Program-made: the position numbers and the translations under genes | The notes under the pieces: generated by a model | Seen by the model: the letters and a program-made list of their open reading frames with translations, nothing else | Database searches by the model: none | Told to the model about the DNA's origin: nothing | NCBI GenBank assembly: GCA_039096225.1 | Contig: JBBPEB010000032.1 | Coordinates: forward strand, 1 to 64,000 | Length of the DNA stretch: 64,000 nt | Direction: 5' to 3' | Source: Blastocystis sp. Blastoise | Taxonomy: Eukaryota > Protista > Bigyra: Opalinata | Shown: positions 14,101 through 30,400 of the stretch, piece after piece | Layout: every line of letters starts with the position of its first letter | Position numbering within the stretch: position 1 is the first letter of the stretch

Positions 14101-14338
14101 TGGTATATGTTGTAGTTCTTCTTACTAGGGTCATGCCGCAGGTCCGGGGCCTAACGGCACCGGACCGCGGCTGCATAAAATAATAACAGTTTGGTTTTTA
14201 TTTTCTTTTTTTCATTATTATATATTATCTATTATATATTATTATTTATTATTTATTATTTATTATCTATTATATATTATTATTTATTATTTATTATCTA
14301 TTATATATTATATATTATATATTATATATTATTATCTA

Positions 14339-14802
14339 TTATATATTATATATTATATATTATATATTATATATTATATATTATATATTATATATTATAT
14401 ATTATATATTATATATTATATATTATATATTATATATTATATATTATATATTATATATTATATATTATATATTATATATTATATATTATATATTATATAT
14501 TATATATTATATATTATATATTATATATTATATATTATATATTATATATTATATATTATATATTATATATTATATATTATATATTATATATTATATATTA
14601 TATATTATATATTATATATTATATATTATATATTATATATTATATATTATATATTATATATTATATATTATATATTATATATTATATATTATATATTATA
14701 TATTATATATTATATATTATATATTATATATTATATATTATATATTATATATTATATATTATATATTATATATTATATATTATATATTATATATTATATA
14801 TT
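14339..14802. repeat. 7-bp (TATATTA)n minisatellite inside Helitron copy 1
   Basis: Homogeneous 7-mer run. It produces the spurious YIIYYIL ORF. Confidence 0.95.
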
Positions 14803-15249
14803 ACTTTAATAACACTTCTTATACTCTATATGGAGAGTTACAATCATTTATTGATTGTAATCAGGTTCAATTCCTGATATAAGAATTAAATAAATTCTTT
14901 AAATGATATCAAAAAAACTAAAAACAATACTTGAAAGAAAATTAAAAAACTATTTTGAATCATTATACATATTATTTATTATTTTTAAAATATATTTTGT
15001 ATTTATTAATAACTAAACAACTGTTTTAAACATTTTGTGAGTTTTTAAAGTCAATAACTTTAGAAATGAGTCACAATGTGAAGAACTCTGAAGTATTTTT
15101 AATTCATAAAATTTATATAAATAAACGTAATATAATGATTTAAACTCATTTTCATACTTTTTAAAAGAATTAGAAAGCTTTAATCATAACAAAGTCAGCA
15201 TTCATTCTAACTTTGACTAATAAAACATGGTTTAAAAAGTTAATATTTC

Positions 15250-16720
15250 TTCAGTTGTCTCAAATACGTATTTTAATCATAAATGACTCGAAAAAGTGAC
15301 TTTTAAAGAGACTTTACCCATTCAAGATCCACTGTATCAAAACAGTTTCCTTCAGTCTTTTGATATAGTATAGAGTTTATCATACTATTTATTAAATAAA
15401 AGTAAATGTTTTGAATCTCTTTCTTAAAGACCCTTTTTGACACATTATGAAAAGTTGACACACTTAAACTCATTTTTATAAGCTAATATTTACATACTAT
15501 ACTCAGTATAGTGTTAGCTACACATTGGTCATCACTTTAAAACATTTTATAAACCTTTTGCATTTGCTCATTTACTTTGACCAAAATATTTTCGTCCCTC
15601 CTTTTGACATAATATAGACTGTGTGGTCTAGTTATATGAAAGTGAGGGGGAATTTTGAATCTCGTCCTCTAAGTCAATCATTTTTACATTTTTCAAAATT
15701 TATACCCCTAAACTTGATATTTTGACTCAACTTTTCTACAGTGTTCCAAAAACACGATTTTGCTCAAACTGAGTGAAAAATATTTTTTCAATAACTCTCA
15801 CAACCCTTTACACATCCACTCTCTAAAAATAGATTTTGCTATATTTTTGATATGTTGTAGAGTGTCTCTTAGTGTATACTGAACAATATCTCGTTTCTTA
15901 AAACTCTCATTTTATGACTCTCTTTGAACATATTATTACTAATTGAAAGGCTTAAACATATTTTTAAAAGCTAATATTTACATAGTAGACTATATATGAC
16001 TCTATAAGCACATTAGTCAACACTTTAGACTTATTAAGAAGACTTTACCATTTGGTCATACACTTTGATCAACATATTTTCGTCCCTTCTTTTAACATAA
16101 TATAGATCATACACTCTAGTTTAATGAATAAACACTCAAATATTGAATCTCGTCCTCTAAGTCACTCATTTTTACATTTTTTTAAATTTAAGACCCTTAG
16201 AGTTGACCTTTTGACTCAATTTTTCTACAGTGCACGAAATTCACGATTTTAAACAAACTAAAGTAAAAATAAATTTTAAATAATAGTCACAACCCTTCAC
16301 ACATCCACTCTCTAAAAATTATTTTCTTTGTACTTTTGATATGTTGTAGAGCTACTACAGCTGTACACTAATTAATATCTCTAAATTTTTTATTCAAAGT
16401 CTAAGACTATGTTTTATACATTTATTTAAATTTGACAACCTTAAACTATTTATTTAAAGCTATTATTCATAAAATAGACTTAATACATGATTCTAAACAC
16501 ATATAGACACCCTTTTACTTTTTAAGACACATTTTGTCATTTGGTCATACACTTTGACCTTCATAATTTTGACTCTCCTTTTGACATCGTATAGAGTATT
16601 ATCTCTAGTTTACTAAATAAAAGTCATTATATTGAATCTCTCACTCTAAGACCACTTAATTCACATTTTTCAAAATTGTGACACTCAAACTCATTATTTT
16701 AAGACTTTGCTTTGACTATA
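15250..16720. repeat. About three diverged ~488-bp tandem units inside Helitron copy 1 (mirrored at about 19480-20950 in copy 2)
   Basis: ttgaatctc occurs at 15655, 16143 and 16632. aagcta(a/t)tatt occurs at 15480, 15968 and 16457. An extra ttgaatctc at 15411 suggests a ~244-bp sub-period. Confidence 0.8.
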
Positions 16721-18883
16721 GTAGTTTTAGGACCTATTGATTACTATGCTGTAATATTAGTCAATTATAAGAAGATCGAAGAAAATATCGATCACTCAAA
16801 AATCGTCCTCAGGAGCTCAAAATCGCTACACCTAGGTTTTTTGACCTCCTGAATCAGAATATGATGTCAAATTGAGAATCTAAATTTGACCGTTAAGGCC
16901 TCACGTGTTCAATATGAAAAAGTATTAAAAAATAGATAAATATAAAGAATAAACACGAATAACGTATATCGTGGGATTGAGAAAAAATCAAGTTTACCCC
17001 ATGTTTATTTTTCAATTGTCTGGTCAACAATTTTTATCGGGATGATCCCAAAGAGCCAATCAAAAACGACTCAAAAATCATGTTTTCTGTTCTTTTATTA
17101 ATATCTTTTTAATTATAAATAATATCGCTTAACCAAATATATGGTGCACAACTACACGTTATATCCTATTGAACTGTGTTTCAACGAAAAGTTAACTCCC
17201 CGTAAGTTTAGAGGAGTTGTGGGTACAAACTCTAGTATATAGTAGCCAATCAAATGAATCTTCCAAAAACTGACCAATGGGAATTTTTTTGCCTATTTGC
17301 TTTATAATAGTAATGATAGTCCAACATTTTGTGGTCATGATATCCATATATATGATCAATGTCATAGTAATACTGATTCTTATTGTAATGCATCTTATTA
17401 TTCTGAAGTGAATACTCCTCAAAAATCATCATTATTTGTAAATACTAATAATGTTAATTCTGAAAATCATTTAACAGTAGAAGATTATGAAGTTTGGGGA
17501 AGAGCTTAAGAACAATTATTTATACATAAAAATATCAAATTTTCATATATATTTATGTATGTAATTATTTTTTAGTATTTTATTTATGAGCTATTAAAGT
17601 TATATTATCATTATTTATCTATTTAAATTATTCTAAAAGTGTGTTTTTTTAATTCAACATTTTTATTAATAATCAAATGAGTTTCGTTTTATATTTAAAC
17701 AAATAATCTTTTTTAATTAATTAATTCATTTACAAGAATAGCAAATTATATTCTATAAATATAATTTCATAACAATATATTAAAAAAATGATTTATTGAG
17801 GATTAACAAAATATCTAGATATTTGTTATTTATATATAATTGATAGTGATGGATTATATTTCTTTTTATAATTTTCTAAAATAGATGAATAATCAAACTC
17901 ATATCTATATTTATATAGTTATTAAACGAAACTATGCAACACAAATAATTCAAAAGTATCTAATTGAATTAATAAAATGTTAAAAGAACATTTTCTTTTA
18001 ATTTTTGCTTATTAATATTAATAATTTTTGATAGTATTATTTATTCTATTCTTCTAGTTGGCTCACATCAAACAAAAAGATATTTTGATTGGATCATTAT
18101 TAAAATATTAATATTCCCGTGAATTTATCAAATATTTGTTAGCTTATCCGCATGTATATGACCTAGTTGAAAAAACTAGTTTTTATCGCATGAAAAAACT
18201 AGGTTTTGTAGAAATGTATTGAAGAATTATGACATATTTTTTAATTTATTTCAAATATGAATTTAGTTGTATCTATTGTTATATGTACATCTGGTAATCA
18301 ACATCAGTATTATGATTATATAAAACAATTCTTTGGCAATGTATTAAATGTATTAGATCACTGGTAGGCATTTTCACGGATATCAAAAAAACGACAAATT
18401 CGAAAAAGTAAACAAAAAATTTTAAGACTATTTTCAGCCAGGCGAAAAGAGTAGCCAAAAACTAGGTTATTTCTGTCGGATATTGTCTTTCTTTTCATTC
18501 GTTCAGAATTCTTTTAGAAACGTCATTTTTTTTTATTTATTTAATCGTTGTGTGAATGATAATAAAAACATATAAAACAAAAGACAATAAATAATAAGAT
18601 AATAATTAACACTATAATAAAAGTAATAAAATAATAATTATTTTGATTTGCTTTGAGTTAATTGTGAACCAATTTGAGGACTATACATATAAAAATAATA
18701 GAACTAATAATAATATAGATAATACAGAATATATACCTTCATACCCACTTGTAGAATACCCCTTGAAGAAAAGCCAATACTATAAAAATATATTGAATAA
18801 AAAATAATATAATATAACAATATACCTTCAACCACCAAACAGACTAGACCAAGAGAGACTTCATGAAGGACCTAGAACCTATA

Positions 18884-21800
18884 TCATTACTATTATAAAG
18901 CAAATAGGCAAAAAAATTCCCATTGGTCAGTTTTTGGAAGATTCATTTGATTGGCTACTATATACTAGAGTTTGTACCCACAACTCCTCTAAACTTACGG
19001 GGAGTTAACTTTTCGTTGAAACACAGTTCAATAGGATATAACGTGTAGTTGTGCACCATATATTTGGTTAAGCGATATTATTTATAATTAAAAAGATATT
19101 AATAAAAGAACAGAAAACATGATTTTTGAGTCGTTTTTGATTGGCTCTTTGGGATCATCCCGATAAAAATTGTTGACCAGACAATTGAAAAATAAACATG
19201 GGGTAAACTTGATTTTTTCTCAATCCCACGATATACGTTATTCGTGTTTATTCTTTATATTTATCTATTTTTTAATACTTTTTCATATTGAACACGTGAG
19301 GCCTTAACGGTCAAATTTAGATTCTCAATTTGACATCATATTCTGATTCAGGAGGTCAAAAAACCTAGGTGTAGCGATTTTGAGCTCCTGAGGACGATTT
19401 TTGAGTGATCGATATTTTCTTCGATCTTCTTATAATTGACTAATATTACAGCATAGTAATCAATAGGTCCTAAAACTACTATAGTCAAAGCAAAGTCTTA
19501 AAATAATGAGTTTGAGTGTCACAATTTTGAAAAATGTGAATTAAGTGGTCTTAGAGTGAGAGATTCAATATAATGACTTTTATTTAGTAAACTAGAGATA
19601 ATACTCTATACGATGTCAAAAGGAGAGTCAAAATTATGAAGGTCAAAGTGTATGACCAAATGACAAAATGTGTCTTAAAAAGTAAAAGGGTGTCTATATG
19701 TGTTTAGAATCATGTATTAAGTCTATTTTATGAATAATAGCTTTAAATAAATAGTTTAAGGTTGTCAAATTTAAATAAATGTATAAAACATAGTCTTAGA
19801 CTTTGAATAAAAAATTTAGAGATATTAATTAGTGTACAGCTGTAGTAGCTCTACAACATATCAAAAGTACAAAGAAAATAATTTTTAGAGAGTGGATGTG
19901 TGAAGGGTTGTGACTATTATTTAAAATTTATTTTTACTTTAGTTTGTTTAAAATCGTGAATTTCGTGCACTGTAGAAAAATTGAGTCAAAAGGTCAACTC
20001 TAAGGGTCTTAAATTTAAAAAAATGTAAAAATGAGTGACTTAGAGGACGAGATTCAATATTTGAGTGTTTATTCATTAAACTAGAGTGTATGATCTATAT
20101 TATGTTAAAAGAAGGGACGAAAATATGTTGATCAAAGTGTATGACCAAATGGTAAAGTCTTCTTAATAAGTCTAAAGTGTTGACTAATGTGCTTATAGAG
20201 TCATATATAGTCTACTATGTAAATATTAGCTTTTAAAAATATGTTTAAGCCTTTCAATTAGTAATAATATGTTCAAAGAGAGTCATAAAATGAGAGTTTT
20301 AAGAAACGAGATATTGTTCAGTATACACTAAGAGACACTCTACAACATATCAAAAATATAGCAAAATCTATTTTTAGAGAGTGGATGTGTAAAGGGTTGT
20401 GAGAGTTATTGAAAAAATATTTTTCACTCAGTTTGAGCAAAATCGTGTTTTTGGAACACTGTAGAAAAGTTGAGTCAAAATATCAAGTTTAGGGGTATAA
20501 ATTTTGAAAAATGTAAAAATGATTGACTTAGAGGACGAGATTCAAAATTCCCCCTCACTTTCATATAACTAGACCACACAGTCTATATTATGTCAAAAGG
20601 AGGGACGAAAATATTTTGGTCAAAGTAAATGAGCAAATGCAAAAGGTTTATAAAATGTTTTAAAGTGATGACCAATGTGTAGCTAACACTATACTGAGTA
20701 TAGTATGTAAATATTAGCTTATAAAAATGAGTTTAAGTGTGTCAACTTTTCATAATGTGTCAAAAAGGGTCTTTAAGAAAGAGATTCAAAACATTTACTT
20801 TTATTTAATAAATAGTATGATAAACTCTATACTATATCAAAAGACTGAAGGAAACTGTTTTGATACAGTGGATCTTGAATGGGTAAAGTCTCTTTAAAAG
20901 TCACTTTTTCGAGTCATTTATGATTAAAATACGTATTTGAGACAACTGAAGAAATATTAACTTTTTAAACCATGTTTTATTAGTCAAAGTTAGAATGAAT
21001 GCTGACTTTGTTATGATTAAAGCTTTCTAATTCTTTTAAAAAGTATGAAAATGAGTTTAAATCATTATATTACGTTTATTTATATAAATTTTATGAATTA
21101 AAAATACTTCAGAGTTCTTCACATTGTGACTCATTTCTAAAGTTATTGACTTTAAAAACTCACAAAATGTTTAAAACAGTTGTTTAGTTATTAATAAATA
21201 CAAAATATATTTTAAAAATAATAAATAATATGTATAATGATTCAAAATAGTTTTTTAATTTTCTTTCAAGTATTGTTTTTAGTTTTTTTGATATCATTTA
21301 AAGAATTTATTTAATTCTTATATCAGGAATTGAACCTGATTACAATCAATAAATGATTGTAACTCTCCATATAGAGTATAAGAAGTGTTATTAAAGTAAT
21401 ATATAATATATAATATATAATATATAATATATAATATATAATATATAATATATAATATATAATATATAATATATAATATATAATATATAATATATAATAT
21501 ATAATATATAATATATAATATATAATATATAATATATAATATATAATATATAATATATAATATATAATATATAATATATAATATATAATATATAATATAT
21601 AATATATAATATATAATATATAATATATAATATATAATATATAATATATAATATATAATATATAATATATAATATATAATATATAATATATAATATATAA
21701 TATATAATATATAATATATAATATATAATATATAATATATAATATATAATATATAATATATAATATATAATATATAATATATAATATATAATATATAATA

Positions 21801-22082
21801 TATAATATATAATATATAATATATAATATATAATATATAATATATAATATATAATATATAATATATAATAGATAATAATATATAATATATAATATATAAT
21901 ATATAATAGATAATAAATAATAAATAATAATATATAATAGATAATAAATAATAAATAATAAATAATAATATATAATAGATAATATATAATAATGAAAAAA
22001 AGAAAATAAAAACCAAACTGTTATTATTTTATGCAGCCGCGGTCCGGTGCCGTTAGGCCCCGGACCTGCGGCATGACCCTAG
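18884..22082 (+). mobile_element. Non-autonomous Helitron, copy 2 (3,199 bp), nested in the CACTA-like element
   Basis: A|TCATTACTATTATAAAG... at 18884. Hairpin gccgcggtccggtgcc-gtta-ggccccggacctgcggc (22036-22072), then CTAG|T at 22079-22083. Reverse complement of copy 1, longer by exactly one 7-bp satellite unit. Confidence 0.92.
21398..21868. repeat. 7-bp (TAATATA)n minisatellite inside Helitron copy 2
   Basis: Reverse complement of 14339-14802. Confidence 0.95.
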
Positions 22083-23229
22083 TAAAAATAAAAGTAGTTA
22101 ATTTAAAAAAAATAAAATATAATAAAATACCTTTAAAACCAGATAGTCAAGGATCAAGGAGACCAGAGACAACAGTTGAACCTATAGAAGACAATAAATA
22201 AAAATAACCTAGAGAATGTAAAAATAAATACCTTCAACAACACAGGATTCCTTCTAGTCCAGACTCCACAACTCATAGCCTAACTAAATAGAATAAAAGA
22301 AATGAAAAAGAAACATACCTTTAAAGAAGAAGACCAATTGCGACCTATTTGAAATCATTTGGATAGACCAGTAAGCCTATATAGCATAAAATAAATAAAA
22401 AATATTATATACATTTTATAATATATAAAATATATCTGAAAAATAAATAAAAATAAAAATAAATATGTGAAAATATTAAATCTTAAAAACAATGAGAAAT
22501 TCCCCCTTATAAAATCTTTATTTCTATAATAAAAGTCTGTATAAATTCGTTGTTTCCAGGGGTTAAAACATTTTAAAAATTTCCTTTTTTCTCTTTTATA
22601 AAGTCTATTTGAATGTAAAAATGATTTTTAAATGTATTATGTGTTTATGAACCTAAATTATTTTATTTCAACATGTTTAAGACTTATTAAAACAAAAATG
22701 TTGTTATTTTAGCACATTATAATTCTAATTCAAAATATTTATCAGTAATATTATATCATAATATTTTATTTATAAAGTAGAGAGTATGAAGAATAAAAAA
22801 ATATATTTAATATAATTATTTATTAATATAAGAATTATAATTTATTAACTTTTATTTTAAATATGTTTTATTAAAACGAATTATCGAATATTATAAGTGA
22901 CTGAATAAAATTATTTTTTTGAAAGGTCATTAAGTTGCTTTAGACATAATAAAGAATGTAATTCATTAAAATATAAAGTAGATTCATATTTTATCTCTTT
23001 CTTTCTATTATTCTAAAAGAATTCTATAAATATTATTATTGTTAAATACCACAAAACAAAAGGAATAATATATAAATAATTAAAAAATAAAAGATAGATA
23101 AAATAGATAATATATAGTATATATAGTAATATATCATTATTATATGAATATATATAAAACTTCTTTCTATCCTATATATACATGATTTTTAAACTATATA
23201 TAATTTAAATATATATATATATATTGATA

Positions 23230-23807
23230 TAGTATTATAAATGTATATATACATTGGAGAGTTATCATTTTTTAAAAATACAAAATAAATTATCCAAAAG
23301 TCTATATAATAATAATAATAAAATAATAATAGTATATATACATATATATATATATACAATACATCATAACCATGTTCTCATAATCATGGTTATCAATAAG
23401 GGAAATAAAACACGGGTATTAAAGGAGGTATATAGTTGTATATATATTTGATATTTTGAATTTATAATAGATAATGGTTTTTTTCTGTAGTATGTATGGA
23501 ATTGTGATACATATATATAATATACTATATCAAAAGTATAATAAAGTATAATAAAGTATATATATATATACAATTGAGAAATTCTCACGAAAAGTATTTC
23601 CCGTGATTATTGATTCATAATGACAACGCGCCACTGTAAGGAGGGAAGATAAACTATGGGATAACAGGAGAACAGTATATAACCACGGGAATAATTAGGT
23701 ATATCTAAAAATATAGATATTGAATATTATATATATACCCAGTATATTTAATAAGATAATCATGTGACGTTAGAAGTTGATAGAGAGATTCATATATCTA
23801 TAGATTC

Positions 23808-23876
<69 letters not shown>

Positions 23877-24793
23877 AAATTATCTAGTATATTCACATCA
23901 TATTTTTCTTCTTTATTCGTGGTTTTCAGTCGATTACGAAGAAGAGAATATACATATTGAACATCAATAGCTATATATATACAGAACCATATAATAATAA
24001 GAGAAACATAACAATATATAAAAAATATATATAATAAAACCATAATAAATATAATAAATATAAAACATACAATGATCTTTTTCTTCTTCTTCTTCTCGCT
24101 TTCCTATATACCTAAACATATCTATCATTTCTTTTTCTTTCTTCTTTCCTGTTTCTTCTTCACCTTCAATTTCAACCGTATTCAGTATATGACTTAATCC
24201 ATAAATCAGTTCTCGAATATATTTCTTTTACTCCTTCTCCTCTTTCTTTCTTTTCATAAGTATTCATTAATCCTATTTCTTTTTCTTCAGGTACTTCCAT
24301 ATCATCATCATCCATTAAATCAGTTCCTGTATCTTTATATGCACCTGTAAAATAATTAGTAGGAGGAGGAGGAGGGAAAGGAGGACTATATACTTCTTCT
24401 AGACTATTATGACTCATATTAAAGGAAATAGAATAAATATCAATCTTTTTAATGTATGTAACTGAAGAGGTATATAAGAAGAAGGACAATGAGTTATTTT
24501 GAATAATTTCTTCTATTCTTGTTAATAAGGTATATATCATATCTTGAGGAATATAACTCAATTCATATATATATAGACTTACTAATATTGTTTCTCTTCT
24601 TTGTATTATATATAATAATATGATATAATATTATAAGTAAGAAACGAGATAGTAAGGTATATAACTGAAATAGATTTCAGAGAAGGTTCAAAAGTATAAT
24701 AAATTGAAGAATAATTTAAAACACTTTTATAAATATATTGCATTCCTAAACCATGTTGTTAAGAAGTCTATAACAATATATAATAATAATAAA

Positions 24794-24846
<53 letters not shown>

Positions 24847-25104
24847 AAGCTATATGATTTATAAAGTGGAATCAATGAGAATATCACGTGCTTTTCTTCA
24901 TTTGATTCGGGAGTACAAATGCATCCTTAACGGAAAATAACTCACCAACTGTTTTCTATAATAATAATAAGAATGCTATTATAATACATAATATATACAA
25001 TAGAATTTCGAATAGAATCAGGAATAGGTTGTGATTCAGGGATGTCATTTATATATAATACTAGCAATTTACTTAATACTTTAATACTCTATATATAATA
25101 TATA

Positions 25105-25137
<33 letters not shown>

Positions 25138-26792
25138 CTTGTTCTGTACATATATCAACACTTGTATTTAATAATAAACTTTGTAAATATTCACGTTCTA
25201 TATATAATAATAAGTATAATAATAATACTATATATATATACGTTGATTAGGGAAGAGAGGGAGTAGTTGACATATAATGGTAGTTGCTTGAATGGATTCA
25301 TATATACGATTATTATGAACAGCTTCATAAAATATATCAATATCCTTATTTGTTAAAGGGATAACAGTGCATATATATTGAAGAAGAGAGAGAGACAATC
25401 GTAACGTTTCTGTATTTAAACACTGTCGGAATAACACATCTAATATATCCTATATATAATAAGTATATATATATAATTATAAGTAATATGTATATATAGT
25501 TATATATACTCTGTCTCGTATGTATTGAACAAGTGATTTATAAATAGCAGATTTTTTTATCGTTTGAAGATCATTAAATAATGTAGTTAAATTAGTTATT
25601 CCCTATATATATATATATATATATAATTATTATATACATCAATTTTATTTTTAATACTTGATCTCATCAATATATATATATATATTAATATATAATTTTT
25701 GATAATCATAAGGTTCTTGATAACTATATATATATATATATATATATTAATAATATAATAAATCATAATTACATTTTTCGTTTTTCAGCAATTTTCAGTG
25801 TATTTGTATATTCATCAACATCAATTTGGCGGGGAAAATCACTTGGTAAAAATTTTAATAAACTATATATATATATATAATAAATATACCCAAATATATA
25901 TATACATTTCATTACAAATAGTAACAAGTGAAGGAAGAGAAGTAAGTATATATATATATATATGCTTAATTTATACATAGAGAATAAGTATTCAAACTAT
26001 ATATATAATAATAATAATAATAACATATATATAAATATATATATATATACATCTTTTCCAAAGTCGATATCTGCCCATAATGATTGTAATACATTCATAT
26101 ATTCATATAAAGAGGTTTCAATAGCTTTATATAAAGAACTATAGGGTTTACAATAATATCGTTTATCTGTATATTCCTCGACAAATGATTTGAGTTCCGT
26201 ACTGAGAATGGGGTCCGTTGGAGGGGGATTGAGGGGAGTCACGAGACGATCACGTGCTGGAATTTCTTTTAGAATCGTATATGAACCTTGAGGTAAATCA
26301 AAACTATATATAGGGTTGAATATAAATATAATAGAATATATTATATGTATACATAAATGCTCTATTATCACTATTTCGTATAAGTGAATATGTATATTTA
26401 TCAGAAATGGGGGAGTAAGAAAGATCTATTATGGTATAAATCCTATATATATATATATATGTAATATATATATATAATATATATACTGTTTGTCCTGATG
26501 ATAATAAATAAGTAAATTCTTATCATGAGATGTATTGGTTAGTACAAGTGACGCATCTAGATGACGCTCCAGGTAAGGAAATGGCTCTACTCTATAATAA
26601 TAATATATAATAATAATATATAATAATATATAATAATAATAATGATAATAATATATATATACATATCAACTTGAATATCTTCTAATCCATAAATATCTAC
26701 TTGTGTATATCCATCTAAATAAACTCTGTATATATTCTTATATATACCTCTCTCTTCAAAGAAATCAAGCACTATTCCCGTGATTCTAAAGA

Positions 26793-26886
<94 letters not shown>

Positions 26887-26950
26887 GTATAATTATCATT
26901 AACATGAATAGACAGATAGAGACCAGTATCCTTTGTAAAATCAGTCTATA
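23230..26950 (-). pseudogene. Intron-rich, largely alpha-helical gene fragment of unknown family carried inside the CACTA-like element, with several disablements
   Basis: Exons bounded by GT-AG introns, e.g. ITGIVLDFFEERGIYKNIYRVYLDGY, FDLPQGSYTILKEIPARDRL, LFRQCLNTETLRLSLSLLQYIC, SPPFPPPPPTNYF. Frameshift near 24228. All three frames contain stops in the exon at about 24850-24955. No DDE/transposase motif recognised. Confidence 0.55.
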
Positions 26951-26989
26951 TAATAATAATAATTATAATAAATATATTTTGAATTACCT

Positions 26990-27400
26990 TTTTAATTTTT
27001 AAAGAACACACCAGCAACCTAATTCACCAATGGCAACTAAAAAGCACCTTCCTATATAATATAATATATAATAAACATATACTAAAAATAGAGTAAATTA
27101 AAAAAAGAATAAAAGAATATTGTAACATAGGAAAAGAGAAAAAAGAAAAATATCTAAATGCAAAGAAAAAAAATATATATAATTATATACCTTCTAGACT
27201 TTGTTAATTGATTATTTGAAGTACCGACAAAACCTAATAAACAACCTAAAAAAATTAAAAATAAACAAATGTAATAAAATACCTTATAAGAAAAAACCCA
27301 ACAAGTACACATGATGAACCACTTTGAAACCGACCTGGGAGAATATCTGTCAGGAAAAGGATTTACACAATGGAAAATTATAAAGTACATACCTGCTTTA
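26990..27400 (-). other. Short exon-like islands at the 5' side of the cargo, probably element-derived leader exons
   Basis: Islands ending AAG|GTA at about 27283, 27191 and 26988 on the - strand. Their composition resembles the 18640-22380 islands. Confidence 0.35.
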
Positions 27401-30400
27401 AAAACTCCTTAAATATGTACAAAAATGTCTATATATGTTTGGTTATAATAATTTAAAAATAAAGATGAATTCACTAATATAATAAAATTTGTTAGTCAAA
27501 TACTAAAAATTTTCGTAAAAATAGCTTTTATATTTTTTTTAATTTTTTATGACTCACTACTAAAATTACAAGTATTAGCACGTCATGCACTGCACTACTG
27601 ACATAAAAGTTTTGTATCCCACAACTTCCAGCTTTTAAAAAATAACTCATTTTTGTTGACTCTCTGATCTGTTGACTAACTCGTCTAGAAACTATTGATT
27701 TTGACTTAAGATGTTTGCACGTTACATAATTAACTCTAAAAATGACTTTTTGAGAGACTTTTATTTGATTCTGAGAAAAAACATTTTTTTTATAAGCTTT
27801 GACATACTTTGTGTATGCGGAACTTTGAGTCATAATAAAATTTAATGAAAAACCTTTTTTAAAACACTTGTGTCCTCTTATATACAATAAAATATAAATA
27901 GACTCAGTTTTGAACAAGAAAAATATTCCCGTAAATATTTTAAAAATTCAAAACTCTGGTCTGACTGCCCATGGAACAAATAGGCTCGGCTCAATTTTTC
28001 AGTGTAAAAAAAAAATAAATTTTTGACTTTTTGGCTGAATTTTGGTTCTGAGCCATGGAGGTCAGCTTATTCACTTTTACACATACTTGTGACTCTGAGA
28101 TGGTCTTCACTTTAAACACAACTATAAAATATTTTAAAATATTGACCCCATTATTTGTCGGAATTGCGACTTTAAAATAAAGAAAAACGTTTTTGATATT
28201 GTGTGACCCTCTATAAATAAAAAATAATGTCAATTCTTTATTAAAATATGTCTAATAGGGTTTTTAAAGTCTAATAAAACGTCGTCTTAAAATTTTTGTG
28301 AAAATTTTCATTTTTTTGCCTAAGTCTTTTTTTTATTCAAATTTTATTGGCTGAATAAGTTCTGAACGAAAATTAGCCAATCAAAAACCTTCAAAAACTC
28401 AAAAGTGCCTACCAGTGGATGAAAGACGTAATGAAATTTTGGGAAAGAATAATGCTTCTATTCGTTATCAATTTGTTCAATATAGTAATTATGATGATAG
28501 AGTACCTATTGATTCAAGTGGAATGAGTAAACCAAATGATTTCTCTGATACATTTTTAAGTAGTGAAACAAGAACAGGTGCTGGTTTCTGTAGCCGTTGT
28601 GGTCATACTTGTAAGGATGTGAATGGTGGTTTAATAGAAGCATTAAAAGAAATTGATAAATTCCCTGGTTGTACTCATATATTATTGGTATGTGGTGGAG
28701 ATCCTATGCATAATTTAGTAAAAGAATGTAAATTAGTATATCCCTATAGAGGAATTGATTTGAATGAACAATATCATATGATCTGTGAAACTATTGTTAA
28801 ACGTAATGTTAAAGTACATTTTATGCCTATTGAAAGAAAAGATATATTATTAAGTGCTGATAAATTAAGAGAAGAAATTGATAATAATGTTTTTGATGGT
28901 AAAAAAGTTGAAGGTAAAGATTATATATTTGATGAAGACTATTTGGTAGACCCTAATAGTAATAAAAGTAATGAGGAAACATTACAGAAAATGGAAGATA
29001 TGTTTGATGATATTCTTATTAATGAATATACTCAAGTATTAAATTCTGTGTAATCTTTATGTTTATTAAATTTTAATTATTTATTTATTTAAATTTTTAT
29101 GCACTTATATATTAATTATATTTTTGATTATCTATATATATAATTTGTAGTATTTGTATTTATTATATATTTCTCCTTTTTTCATTTAATAATATTATGC
29201 GTGAGTTTTGTTTTTAAAAATTTAATCATTGATAATATTCAGTGTAATATATATTAAAAATACTTTTATAGAAAATTCTCTTGTTAATTCAACATTTATT
29301 ATAAGGAAACTTAGGATTATTTATAATATACATGATAAATCCTATAATAAGCTTTTTAGTGTCAAAAACATTTTTTTTATGTATTATTATGATAATGCTC
29401 AAGGAAAATATTATTAAATAAAATGGGAATGGATATATATATACAACTAGTAAATAGAATGAATATATAATTATATTATAAATAGAATAATACTTAATAA
29501 ATTGTTTAGTGATAGTTCAACTAGTTAAGAGTTTCATTTGTATTATGATAATATGAAGAATATAGTTTTATTTATTAATCATATTGATAATCAGAGAATA
29601 GTCAATAGATTTGATGGATATATATATATATAAGAAATGGAAATAATAAAAATATACTAAAATATTAAGAATACTTTAATATGAATTGTTATTGAAAAAA
29701 TTTAACAAAAATAAAATATAAAGAATAATAATAGGTTCATTTTTCTCATGTTATTTATATTTAAATATATAATAAGTACACTTAATGATATTTTATTTAA
29801 TAAAAGTATAAATAAAAGTTATTAATTCTCATATAGTTCAATTAAAATATGATAATTTATGCTTAGATAATGCTTTAAATAAGTGTAACTTGATAGACAT
29901 ATGTAGCAATAATTTTGAACATAATAAGAAGTTTATTGAAGAAAGTATATTATTTTAATGTGATTTCATTTTAGAATAGAAGAATTCAGATCCAGTAATA
30001 TCTTTTTCATAAACATAGATTCATAATTTGACTTTCGAAAAAATTCAAATGAATAGATAAACATGTAAGTATGATCATCTATCTCAATTTGAATTATAAA
30101 ATGAATAATTTGTAATTATTTGATATTTGCTATATCTAACCATATTATTTTGATAGAATAGATAAGAATTTACTCTATTTTGATAATTTAATAAATATAA
30201 TAAGTACTCTTTTTGATAGTATAATGTAAATAGACATTTAAGACTTGAATATGAGCATATACTGAATTTTTATTTTTTAAAATAATCAATAATAAGGCAG
30301 AAATAATGAATAATGAGTTGTTTTTGAAAAAAAATTATAGAAAAAGACCTGAAAATGACTGAAAAAGAATCATGGATATTTATAAGAAAATAGTTCAATT

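Follow-up and report, generated by a model that had tools for sequence, protein, structure and literature searches.

A probable non-autonomous CACTA-like transposon with a family-wide interior module and a nested Helitron interrupts a gene of Blastocystis

What has split a protein-coding gene of Blastocystis sp. Blastoise (NCBI), and is the multi-exon gene found inside the intruding DNA a piece of the host genome or part of a transposon's own equipment? The locus lies in a window of 64,000 nucleotides, the whole stretch of DNA analysed, from a tortoise isolate whose genome comprises 33.3 Mb at 23% GC and for which the genome paper gives bulk transposon percentages only (5.6–7.5%; PMC10690189). 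An earlier sequence-only reading had described a 10-kb CACTG-ended element that carries host cargo and splits a vWA gene. The element occupies window positions 18359–28417 (10,059 bp). Its terminal inverted repeat (TIR), CACTGGTAGGCA, stands at 18359–18370 on the plus strand and at 28406–28417 on the minus strand; the right end is the reverse complement of the left at 12 of 12 positions, and similarity between the ends falls away beyond these 12 bp. Both ends are flanked by a GAT target site duplication (TSD; 18356–18358 and 28418–28420). Comparison of the two ends bears out the TIR, the duplication and the CACTG termini of the earlier description, as well as its remark that the GTG listed as an open reading frame start at 28415 is really the final three bases of the TIR. 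Inverted 10-mer runs between the ends number seven, compared with 1.1 in shuffled sequences, and none of 500 shuffles reached seven. Of three inverted subterminal motifs reported previously, two hold: TTCGTTCAGAA, ~140 bp from the left end and 47 bp from the right, and AAATTTTAAGAC, 58 bp from the left end and 122 bp from the right, are found at these same distances in the majority of 12 other copies. The third, ATATCAAAAA, is conserved in the left arm only, and its right-hand match therefore looks like chance.

The interrupted gene can be reassembled across the element. Its 5' piece (18257–18358, plus strand, codons 1–34) ends in a GAT codon, which is the duplicated target, and its 3' piece (28421–29053, plus strand) supplies codons 35–244 and the stop. 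Joined, the two form an open frame of 244 codons (translated by a local script, while the searches used the two pieces separately). An intact paralogue, P0002, has the same length of 244 amino acids and aligns without gaps to both pieces, at residues 1–34 for the first and, with 68% identity, at residues 35–244 for the second. An intact paralogue joining both halves colinearly was among the checks that the earlier reading had proposed, and it agrees with the claim that the element splits a gene. It is thus shown that the element went into codon 34 of this gene of 244 codons and made a 3-bp duplication. The insertion has inactivated the host gene in its original form, and public annotation supplies it with a transposon-derived start: mapping of the P0001 sequence to the window places the 5' part of gene model WA158_005159 at 27585–28417 (plus strand), with exon 1 at ~27585–27611 and an exon 2 that enters at ~28358 and reads through the TIR. 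The vWA label found no support. Neither host piece, nor P0001, nor P0002 has a Pfam or PDB sequence match, and the alternating strand–helix order in an AlphaFold model of P0002 (mean pLDDT 38) would fit a Rossmann-like or vWA fold but at this low confidence proves nothing.

The element belongs to a family. The exact CACTGGTAGGCA 12-mer occurs 27 + 27 times in the genome and 0 + 0 times for the control, and these 54 occurrences form 21 convergent pairs of 6.5–33 kb that jointly make up ~0.78% of the genome. Matching 3-bp flanks were found in 10 of 12 full copies, and a perfect TSD is absent from the other two; the match expected by chance, calculated for this base composition, is ~3.5% per pair. 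Eight different 3-mers serve as TSDs (GAT, AAA, ATT, AGA, ATA, TTT, ATC and ACC). The recurrence of TIR and TSD is far beyond chance, and the search for further copies with 3-bp TSDs, which the sequence-only reading had advised, turned out in its favor. Several TIR variants coexist in the genome, beginning CACTGG, CACTAG and CACTATC. One sister variant (L066) has a true CACTA end, CACTATCAGGT, and the TSD ATT/ATT, another carries CACTAGTAGGCA, and the pattern CACTRNYAGGYA has 216 matches vs. 47 for its control. Among CACTGGTAGGCA copies the outer parts are shared: the first part of the left arm (18359–18883, plus strand), which holds the motifs at ~58 and ~140 bp, is common to all 12 other copies at 84–88%, the second part (22083–23241, plus strand) to other copies at ~80%, and the right arm (27375–28417, plus strand) at 85–99%. 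Over its last 587 bp the right arm matches two transposase-bearing elements (C15:760025 and C28:407889) at their right ends, with 87% identity. The interiors enclosed by these arms differ, i.e., A (the window and L045), B (10 copies) and C (L051), and 10 of the 12 other copies compared contain an interior (B or C) unrelated to that of the window.

The gap between the two parts of the left arm is filled by a second transposon. A non-autonomous Helitron of 3,199 bp (18884–22082, plus strand) begins with TC, ends with CTAG and is flanked by A on its 5' side and T on its 3' side, with no TSD. A GC-rich hairpin (22036–22072, plus strand) ends 10 nt before the 3' CTAG; its DNA fold of −19 kcal/mol (z −4.4) was equaled in stability by none of 200 shuffles. 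The Helitron interior contains repeats of ~470 bp as well as a microsatellite with a 7-bp unit (about 21398–21990), and no open reading frame of at least 60 amino acids was found in it save one low-complexity frame across the microsatellite. Position 18883 directly abuts 22083 in all other copies, with L045 representing the empty site, and A|TC is seen at 10 of 10 other Helitron 5' junctions. More than 140 candidate copies exist genome-wide, together with at least 50 RepHel ORFs, seen as 51 Helitron_like_N matches at ~200 bits, mostly in ORFs of 1,400–1,650 amino acids. Its ends, hairpin, insertion between A and T without TSD, and RepHel-encoding relatives mark the insert as a Helitron. An inverted twin, 99.8% identical with one 7-bp indel, lies 1.5 kb upstream of the element (14125–17316, minus strand). 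The Helitron would have entered the left arm at an AT dinucleotide after, or around the time of, the insertion of the element itself. The nested 3.2 kb raise the element from 6.86 to 10.06 kb. Accordingly, the "10-kb" description was right as to total length, while the size is owed to the Helitron; the core measures 6,860 bp, compared with 6,853 bp for the closest copy. Three layers are thus stacked in the window: a gene, a CACTA-type element within it, and a Helitron within the element.

Transposons of the CMC superfamily have TIRs that start with CACT(A/G) and short TSDs of 2–4 bp, classically 3 bp, of variable sequence. TIR, TSDs and subterminal motifs agree with the earlier assignment of the element to this CACTA/CMC type, and the search for Transposase_21 and DUF4218, likewise advised by the sequence-only reading, led to related ORFs inside larger pairs with the same TIR. 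Specifically, eight of nine CACTGGTAGGCA pairs of at least 13.9 kb hold an ORF of ~790–900 amino acids related to Transposase_21/DUF4218 ORFs, and no such ORF (L011-like) occurs in any of the 12 pairs of up to 10.1 kb; the assignment is by coordinates and homology. Transposase-bearing elements include C2:77035–93168, C17:856638–872548, C8:599420–613287, C28:499660–513527, C18:6778–20893 and C23:437100–451244. Genome-wide, four ORFs (744–758 amino acids) exceed the Pfam cut-off for Transposase_21. DUF4218-like matches number 35, in ORFs of 430–1,618 amino acids, all under the Pfam cut-off (17–26 bits vs. 27), and one 744-amino-acid ORF has both matches in the correct order. Pfam makes no Transposase_21 call on the 410-amino-acid fragment of the L011 ORF, and the link to CMC is carried by coordinates and by the homology of this fragment to the four cut-off-passing ORFs (E 6e-15 to 3e-12); the DUF4218-like matches fall in the same ORFs as the L011-related ones. 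Sequences around the L049 insertion in the C15 transposase-bearing element did not resemble the left arm in the window. Within the window there was no Transposase_21, DUF4218 or L011-like match, and Pfam returned nothing for the interior ORFs and gene models of the element; a run of nine gene models gave no usable match. The element has no recognisable transposase of its own and is non-autonomous, as had been claimed, and the presence of the transposase ORF in eight of nine long pairs and in none of 12 short ones points to autonomous relatives. Overall, the element probably belongs, as a non-autonomous member, to a cut-and-paste family of the CMC (CACTA-like) kind; it has autonomous relatives, a family-wide interior module and a nested Helitron. 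Larger elements with the same TIR would supply a DDE transposase in trans, which would recognise the TIR together with the subterminal motifs by binding, excise the element and reinsert it via a 3-bp staggered cut.

The interior module itself, A (23242–27374, minus strand, delimited by comparing interiors across copies), was found at 25 or more places at 76–93% identity and under three TIR variants. Annotated within it is gene model WA158_005158 (P0011, 618 amino acids, 17 exons; 23735–27312, minus strand, from the exon map). P0011 matches the 1,124-amino-acid P0012 only at residues 148–338 and 826–1092; it has no counterpart of the middle region 339–825, and its N-terminus is different. Judged by this alignment, WA158_005158 corresponds to a 1,124-amino-acid family gene with an internal deletion. 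The long form would have a Fibro_Slime-like domain and helical repeats. The domain match (TIGR02148) reached E 6e-10 and 39.5 bits vs. a cut-off of 45, and a genome search for Fibro_Slime gave one weak match only, itself within a CACT element. A protein language model offered USP9X-type ARM/UBL proteins as a lead, with a score of 0.89 that is under the tool's reliability line; this identity was rejected as PF22900 and PF25010 were blank in the genome and a PDB sequence search was blank as well. AlphaFold modeled P0012 residues 339–825 with a mean pLDDT of 35. The "cargo" is a family-wide module: many sister elements carry this multi-exon gene, which is restricted to the lineage, and the window copy of it has an internal deletion. 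The gene may go back to an old capture of host DNA or belong to the element as an accessory gene.

One possible, though doubtful, explanation is that the family owns the interior gene as an accessory gene, with a role analogous to that of TnpA of En/Spm, and that the window copy may have arisen by deletion from an element in which this gene and a transposase were once both present. Presence of the gene in all three TIR-variant subfamilies and in at least 25 copies would fit such a role, as would the signs of purifying selection: Ka/Ks among four module-A gene copies is 0.44–0.61, and exons have diverged by 2.4–4.1% vs. 3.8–6.2% for introns. However, Ka/Ks is calculated here from only 16–45 substitutions per pair, and gene models of different copies range from 252 to 1,124 amino acids, which suggests decay. 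Internal deletion of a long form, as in the window, is the usual route to non-autonomous elements, and at C28:171714–178084 a transposase-like ORF and a diverged long-form middle are found on opposite strands, separated by 4 kb. On the other hand, the autonomous CACTGGTAGGCA pairs have no module-A match save ~430 bp beside the right arm, and a Fibro_Slime-type domain is unexpected in a DNA-binding accessory protein.

The alternative closest to the sequence-only reading, transduplication of the Pack-CACTA type in which host coding DNA at 23.2–27.4 kb was captured at the DNA level and is carried by a non-autonomous CACTA element, is unlikely. It would account for the same termini enclosing the unrelated interiors A, B and C, for an interior gene that has several exons, introns and no transposase domain, and for the mosaic look of that gene, in which a Fibro_Slime-like domain (P0012) is joined in a sister model (P0014) by an added fragment of a Tc1/IS630-type transposase; the language-model lead, sub-threshold as it is, points to USP9X-type ARM/UBL proteins. 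However, no parent was found. Searches with an exon, P0007 and P0012 in 1.8 and 5.8 billion proteins yielded homologues only among the annotated models of this genome, and all those mapped here lie within transposon copies. The long-form middle occurs at only five places. CACT-ended elements enclose four of these, and a transposase-like ORF is 4 kb away from the fifth; the searches with PF22900, PF25010 and TIGR02148 yielded no host gene. The module is also older than the window copy, given its three TIR variants and its range of identities, and a Ka/Ks of ~0.45 with exons less diverged than introns is unlike freely decaying cargo. The operational criterion for Pack-TYPE elements is an interior that matches a host coding gene which is neither transposase nor transposon (PMC8903248). 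The present element is a non-autonomous TIR element with a TSD, and different interiors occur within the same ends; since homologues of its interior came from this genome only, and neither a parent outside transposons nor a separate long-form locus was found, it falls outside that definition, although a diverged parent could escape such a search. The claim that this element captured ~3.7 kb of host gene is not supported. Somewhat unlikely is the suggestion that non-autonomous members of the family multiply a spliced, mildly constrained, lineage-restricted gene that might represent either the first transduplication in the manner of Pack-CACTA outside plants, with the gene kept functional, or a new transposon accessory protein.

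That the element belongs not to CMC but to another superfamily with 3-bp TSDs or CAxTG ends (PIF/Harbinger, Zator or Tc1/mariner) is very improbable: Tc1/IS630-type DDE_3 ORFs number 43 in the genome, two of them adjoin CACTAGTAGGCA termini and one interior gene model includes a fused DDE_3 fragment, but the TSDs are varied 3-mers and neither TA (Tc1/mariner) nor TWA (PIF/Harbinger), most DDE_3 ORFs, including at least 15 of 17 with identical scores, are far from CACT termini, and the ORFs within TIR pairs are related to Transposase_21. DDE_3 was also rejected, on coordinates, as the mobilising partner.

The biology of the non-autonomous CMC element is standard, ordinary transposon biology in a genome that has been little studied. 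This genome has many transposase and RepHel ORFs that are open and share identical search scores, and across two probed stretches three Helitron copies do not differ, which suggests that DNA-transposon activity is recent or ongoing in this Blastocystis lineage. Two public gene models are marked as transposon-derived, i.e., WA158_005158 and the chimeric start of WA158_005159, and such models bear on gene counts and on claims of "lineage-specific genes".

Compared with known systems, the nested insert resembles other non-autonomous Helitrons in its TC and CTAG ends, the hairpin 10 nt from the 3' end, A–T insertion without TSD, tandem arrays, and RepHel-encoding relatives in the genome; it differs in that it has no coding capacity and contains ~470-bp repeats and a long 7-bp microsatellite. 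With plant Pack-CACTA and Pack-TYPE elements (PMC8903248; bioRxiv 10.1101/342816) the element shares non-autonomy, TIR and TSD, an intron-containing non-transposase gene and different interiors between the same ends. In contrast to these, the defining match to a non-transposon parent is missing for the window interior, which is present in dozens of copies and shows signs of mild purifying selection. The element differs from CACTA/En-Spm and its dSpm/I-type derivatives in its host, a gut protist of the stramenopiles whose genome has 23% GC, and in transposase ORFs whose divergence puts them out of reach of most Pfam cut-offs; in addition, the plant-type domains Transpos_assoc and DUF4216 have no matches in the genome, and several TIR variants exist side by side. 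The likeness lies in the CACT(A/G) termini, the 3-bp TSD and the subterminal repeats, and in the combination of large autonomous members that carry a Transposase_21/DUF4218-related ORF with shorter, rearranged members that would be mobilised in trans.

The element, 10,059 bp at window positions 18359-28417 of the Blastocystis sp. Blastoise contig (taxid 3128533), lies in very AT-rich DNA (GC of the window ~20%) and displays well-defined ends. Its 12-bp terminal inverted repeat (TIR), CACTGGTAGGCA, starts at 18359 and is identical over all 12 bases to the reverse complement of 28406-28417; past the TIR, the two ends match at scattered bases only. Both ends are bordered by GAT, and in silico excision of 18359-28420 with a local script joined 18257-18358 to 28421-29053 in an open frame of 244 codons. 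The 'GTG start' at 28415 in the ORF track corresponds to the final three TIR bases. The repeat, the target-site duplication (TSD), the clean rejoining and the reassignment of the GTG in the sequence-only reading were therefore correct as written. Two subterminal motifs occupy fixed positions, are inverted between the arms and are kept across copies, and no transposase domain was found in the interior ORFs or gene models. By its ends, TSDs, subterminal motifs and lack of a transposase, the element is structurally of the CMC/CACTA type and non-autonomous, as had been proposed.

The interruption of the host gene is precise. The 3' ORF piece as a protein query recovered two proteins of Blastocystis sp. 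Blastoise. WA158_004765 is an intact 244-aa paralogue of the split gene; its residues 1-34 align without gaps to the 5' piece (34 aa, 38% identity) and its residues 35-244 to the 3' piece (210 aa, 68% identity), the pieces having been searched separately and the joined frame translated by the local script alone. Both halves are thus colinear with an intact homologue, as the earlier interpretation demanded, and the gap-free alignments place the insertion precisely at the boundary of codons 34 and 35, in a gene equal in length to its paralogue. In the public annotation the interrupted gene is modelled as WA158_005159 (27585-29053, 240 aa), a chimera with a transposon-derived start: exon 1 (about 27585-27611) lies within the right arm of the element, exon 2 enters at about 28358 and reads across the TIR, and the first 30 residues derive from the right arm. 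Pfam and PDB sequence searches of the host-gene pieces and proteins returned no match and gave no support for vWA, the identity assigned earlier. Structure predictions were unusable for both the intact paralogue (single-sequence AlphaFold model, mean pLDDT 38) and the interior gene.

The element belongs to a multicopy family. Its terminal 300-bp stretches match at least 40 places in the genome for each end, and among twelve full copies compared, all carry the same TIR and ten are bordered by a matching pair of 3-bp flanks, with eight sequences represented among them; the anticipated TSD-bearing copies do exist. Genome-wide, the exact 12-mer CACTGGTAGGCA has 27+27 occurrences (0+0 for the control), forming 21 convergent pairs of 6.5-33 kb. 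Related elements end in CACTAGTAGGCA or in a true CACTA terminus, CACTATCAGGT, the latter with the TSD ATT/ATT. The degenerate pattern CACTRNYAGGYA gave 216 matches vs 47 for the control, including six pairs spaced exactly 97 bp, which from their coordinates are probable MITE derivatives within the superfamily. Five of these sites have convergent CACTATTAGGCA termini (C8:600098-600194, C15:526190-526286, C15:562109-562205, C15:681252-681348 and C16:1331656-1331752; C numbers denote contigs), and the sixth (C8:2293714-2293810) ends in CACTAATAGGCA and CACTGATAGGCA. At C17:65038-68901, CACTAGTAGGTA is repeated, partly at 324-bp spacing, which suggests a satellite that includes a TIR-like motif and not the termini of elements.

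In every other copy, the base corresponding to 18883 is joined directly to that at 22083, leaving 3,199 additional bp (18884-22082) in the window copy. This insert begins with TC, ends with CTAG and lies between A and T without duplication, the empty site being preserved in the closest relative of the element (C29:586877-593729). It contains a GC-rich 37-nt hairpin that ends 10 nt from its 3' end (-19 kcal/mol, z -4.4), ten of ten other 5' junctions read A|TC, and the genome holds more than 140 candidate copies, some in tandem arrays at about 3.17-kb spacing, as well as 51 Helitron_like_N matches of about 200 bits, most of them in stop-free ORFs of 1,400-1,650 aa. These marks identify the insert as a nested Helitron of the non-autonomous kind; autonomous Helitrons look intact and numerous in this genome (examples of Helitron_like_N loci are C4:1529821-1530390, C14:1063034-1063603 and C8:78227-78796). 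Without the Helitron the element measures 6,860 bp; its closest relative measures 6,853 bp and is 92-99% identical. An inverted twin at window 14125-17316 (minus strand), 1.5 kb away, is 99.8% identical to the nested Helitron and differs by one 7-bp microsatellite unit; a third copy (C14:1085056-1087572) is 100% identical over both probed stretches. At C4:1504403-1542691, 3.2-kb copies are arranged in two head-to-tail runs, spaced about 3.17 kb apart and beside a RepHel ORF, which looks like tandem Helitron arrays. The Helitron stretch at window 21318-21375 resembles a tRNA T-arm/B-box (GGTTCAATTCC, minus strand); ARAGORN reported no tRNA there.

Transposase_21 and DUF4218, which occur in that order in CACTA transposases, had been suggested as profiles for finding an autonomous partner, and they led to candidates. 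Four ORFs of 744-758 aa passed the Transposase_21 cut-off genome-wide; DUF4218 gave 35 matches, all sub-threshold (17-26 bits), in ORFs 430-1,618 aa long, and one 744-aa ORF carries both domains, with DUF4218 downstream of Transposase_21. One locus, L011, includes the initial 410 codons of a transposase-type ORF of 834 aa, a fragment to which Pfam assigned no name. Searched against the genome, this fragment hits all four Transposase_21 ORFs at E 6e-15 to 3e-12, plus some 50 further loci. Of the nine CACTGGTAGGCA pairs with a length of at least 13.9 kb, eight contain an L011-type ORF (C2:77035-93168, C17:856638-872548, C8:599420-613287, C28:499660-513527, C18:6778-20893, C23:437100-451244, C8:2194228-2215457 and C15:1019301-1052225), against none of the twelve pairs of at most 10.1 kb; the combined length of all pairs is about 259 kb (0.78% of the genome), for which chance predicts about 0.4 matches. 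The ninth long pair (C8:58383-83455, 25 kb) owes its size to an internal RepHel Helitron. Independent copies agree on where the ORF lies: its distance from the left end is about 5.4 kb for both C2 and C17, and 6.66 kb for both C8 and C28. Elements starting at C15:760025 and C28:407889 also carry an L011-type ORF and match the right-terminal 587 bp of the window element at 87%, and its last 290 bp at 95-96%. From coordinates and homology, these larger same-ended elements are candidate autonomous partners. Unusually long open frames with CMC-type transposase similarity (1,201-1,631 aa) at C34:613755-617705 and C26:595262-599208 may be fusions with another domain. Tc1/IS630-type DDE_3 gave 43 matches in ORFs of 361-455 aa; because 17 share an identical score and a 361-aa open frame, recent activity of this Tc1-like family is suggested.

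What the other CACTGGTAGGCA copies have in common with the window is limited to about 1.7 kb at the left end and 1.0 kb at the right. Between these arms lies unrelated sequence, one interior (B) in ten copies and a second (C) in one copy; shared arms with different interiors are a Pack-like pattern. The interior gene of the window copy, WA158_005158 (23735-27312, minus strand, 17 annotated exons, 618 aa), is transposon-derived. Searches of 1.8 billion representative proteins with HMMER and of 5.8 billion with a word-based method found no homologues outside this genome; those recovered are models from sister copies, of 252 to 1,124 aa. Compared with the longest, P0012, residues 339-825 are missing from the window copy, whose N-terminus also differs. 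Only five places hold this missing middle: four lie within CACT-ended elements, and the other is 4 kb away from a transposase-like ORF. A Fibro_Slime-like domain in P0012 (E 6e-10, under the NCBIfam cut-off) and a Tc1/IS630 transposase fragment at the start of a sister model make the gene look mosaic. Across four copies, Ka/Ks of the annotated exons is 0.44-0.61 and divergence rises from exons (2.4-4.1%) to introns (3.8-6.2%) to arms (up to 17.5%); at these small counts, the pattern suggests a degree of coding constraint as well as interior exchange between subfamilies. Window DNA 23600-27400 matches at least 25 places at 76-93% identity, so the interior is not private to this copy, and interior-bearing elements cover all three TIR variants. 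An intron-containing gene does lie between the arms, as the proposal of captured cargo held, but capture by this copy does not stand, and we read the interior as an old, family-wide module, which the family may once have taken up from the host.

A transposase of ~830-900 aa would act in trans on the TIR and on the subterminal motifs to mobilize the element, which would insert by a 3-bp staggered cut. The Helitron would have entered after the element reached its present site, since it is absent from every other copy.

In operational terms, a Pack-TYPE element has to match a host gene that is not part of a transposon (PMC8903248). Because the interior of the window element matched, in the protein searches, only models from element copies of its own genome, the earlier Pack-CACTA-like assignment is not retained. 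For this Blastocystis, an isolate from a Russian tortoise (33.3 Mb, 33 contigs, 23.1% GC), transposons are given only as a bulk figure of 5.6-7.5% (PMC10690189). The window provides a CMC/CACTA element from an organism whose transposons have so far lacked detailed description.
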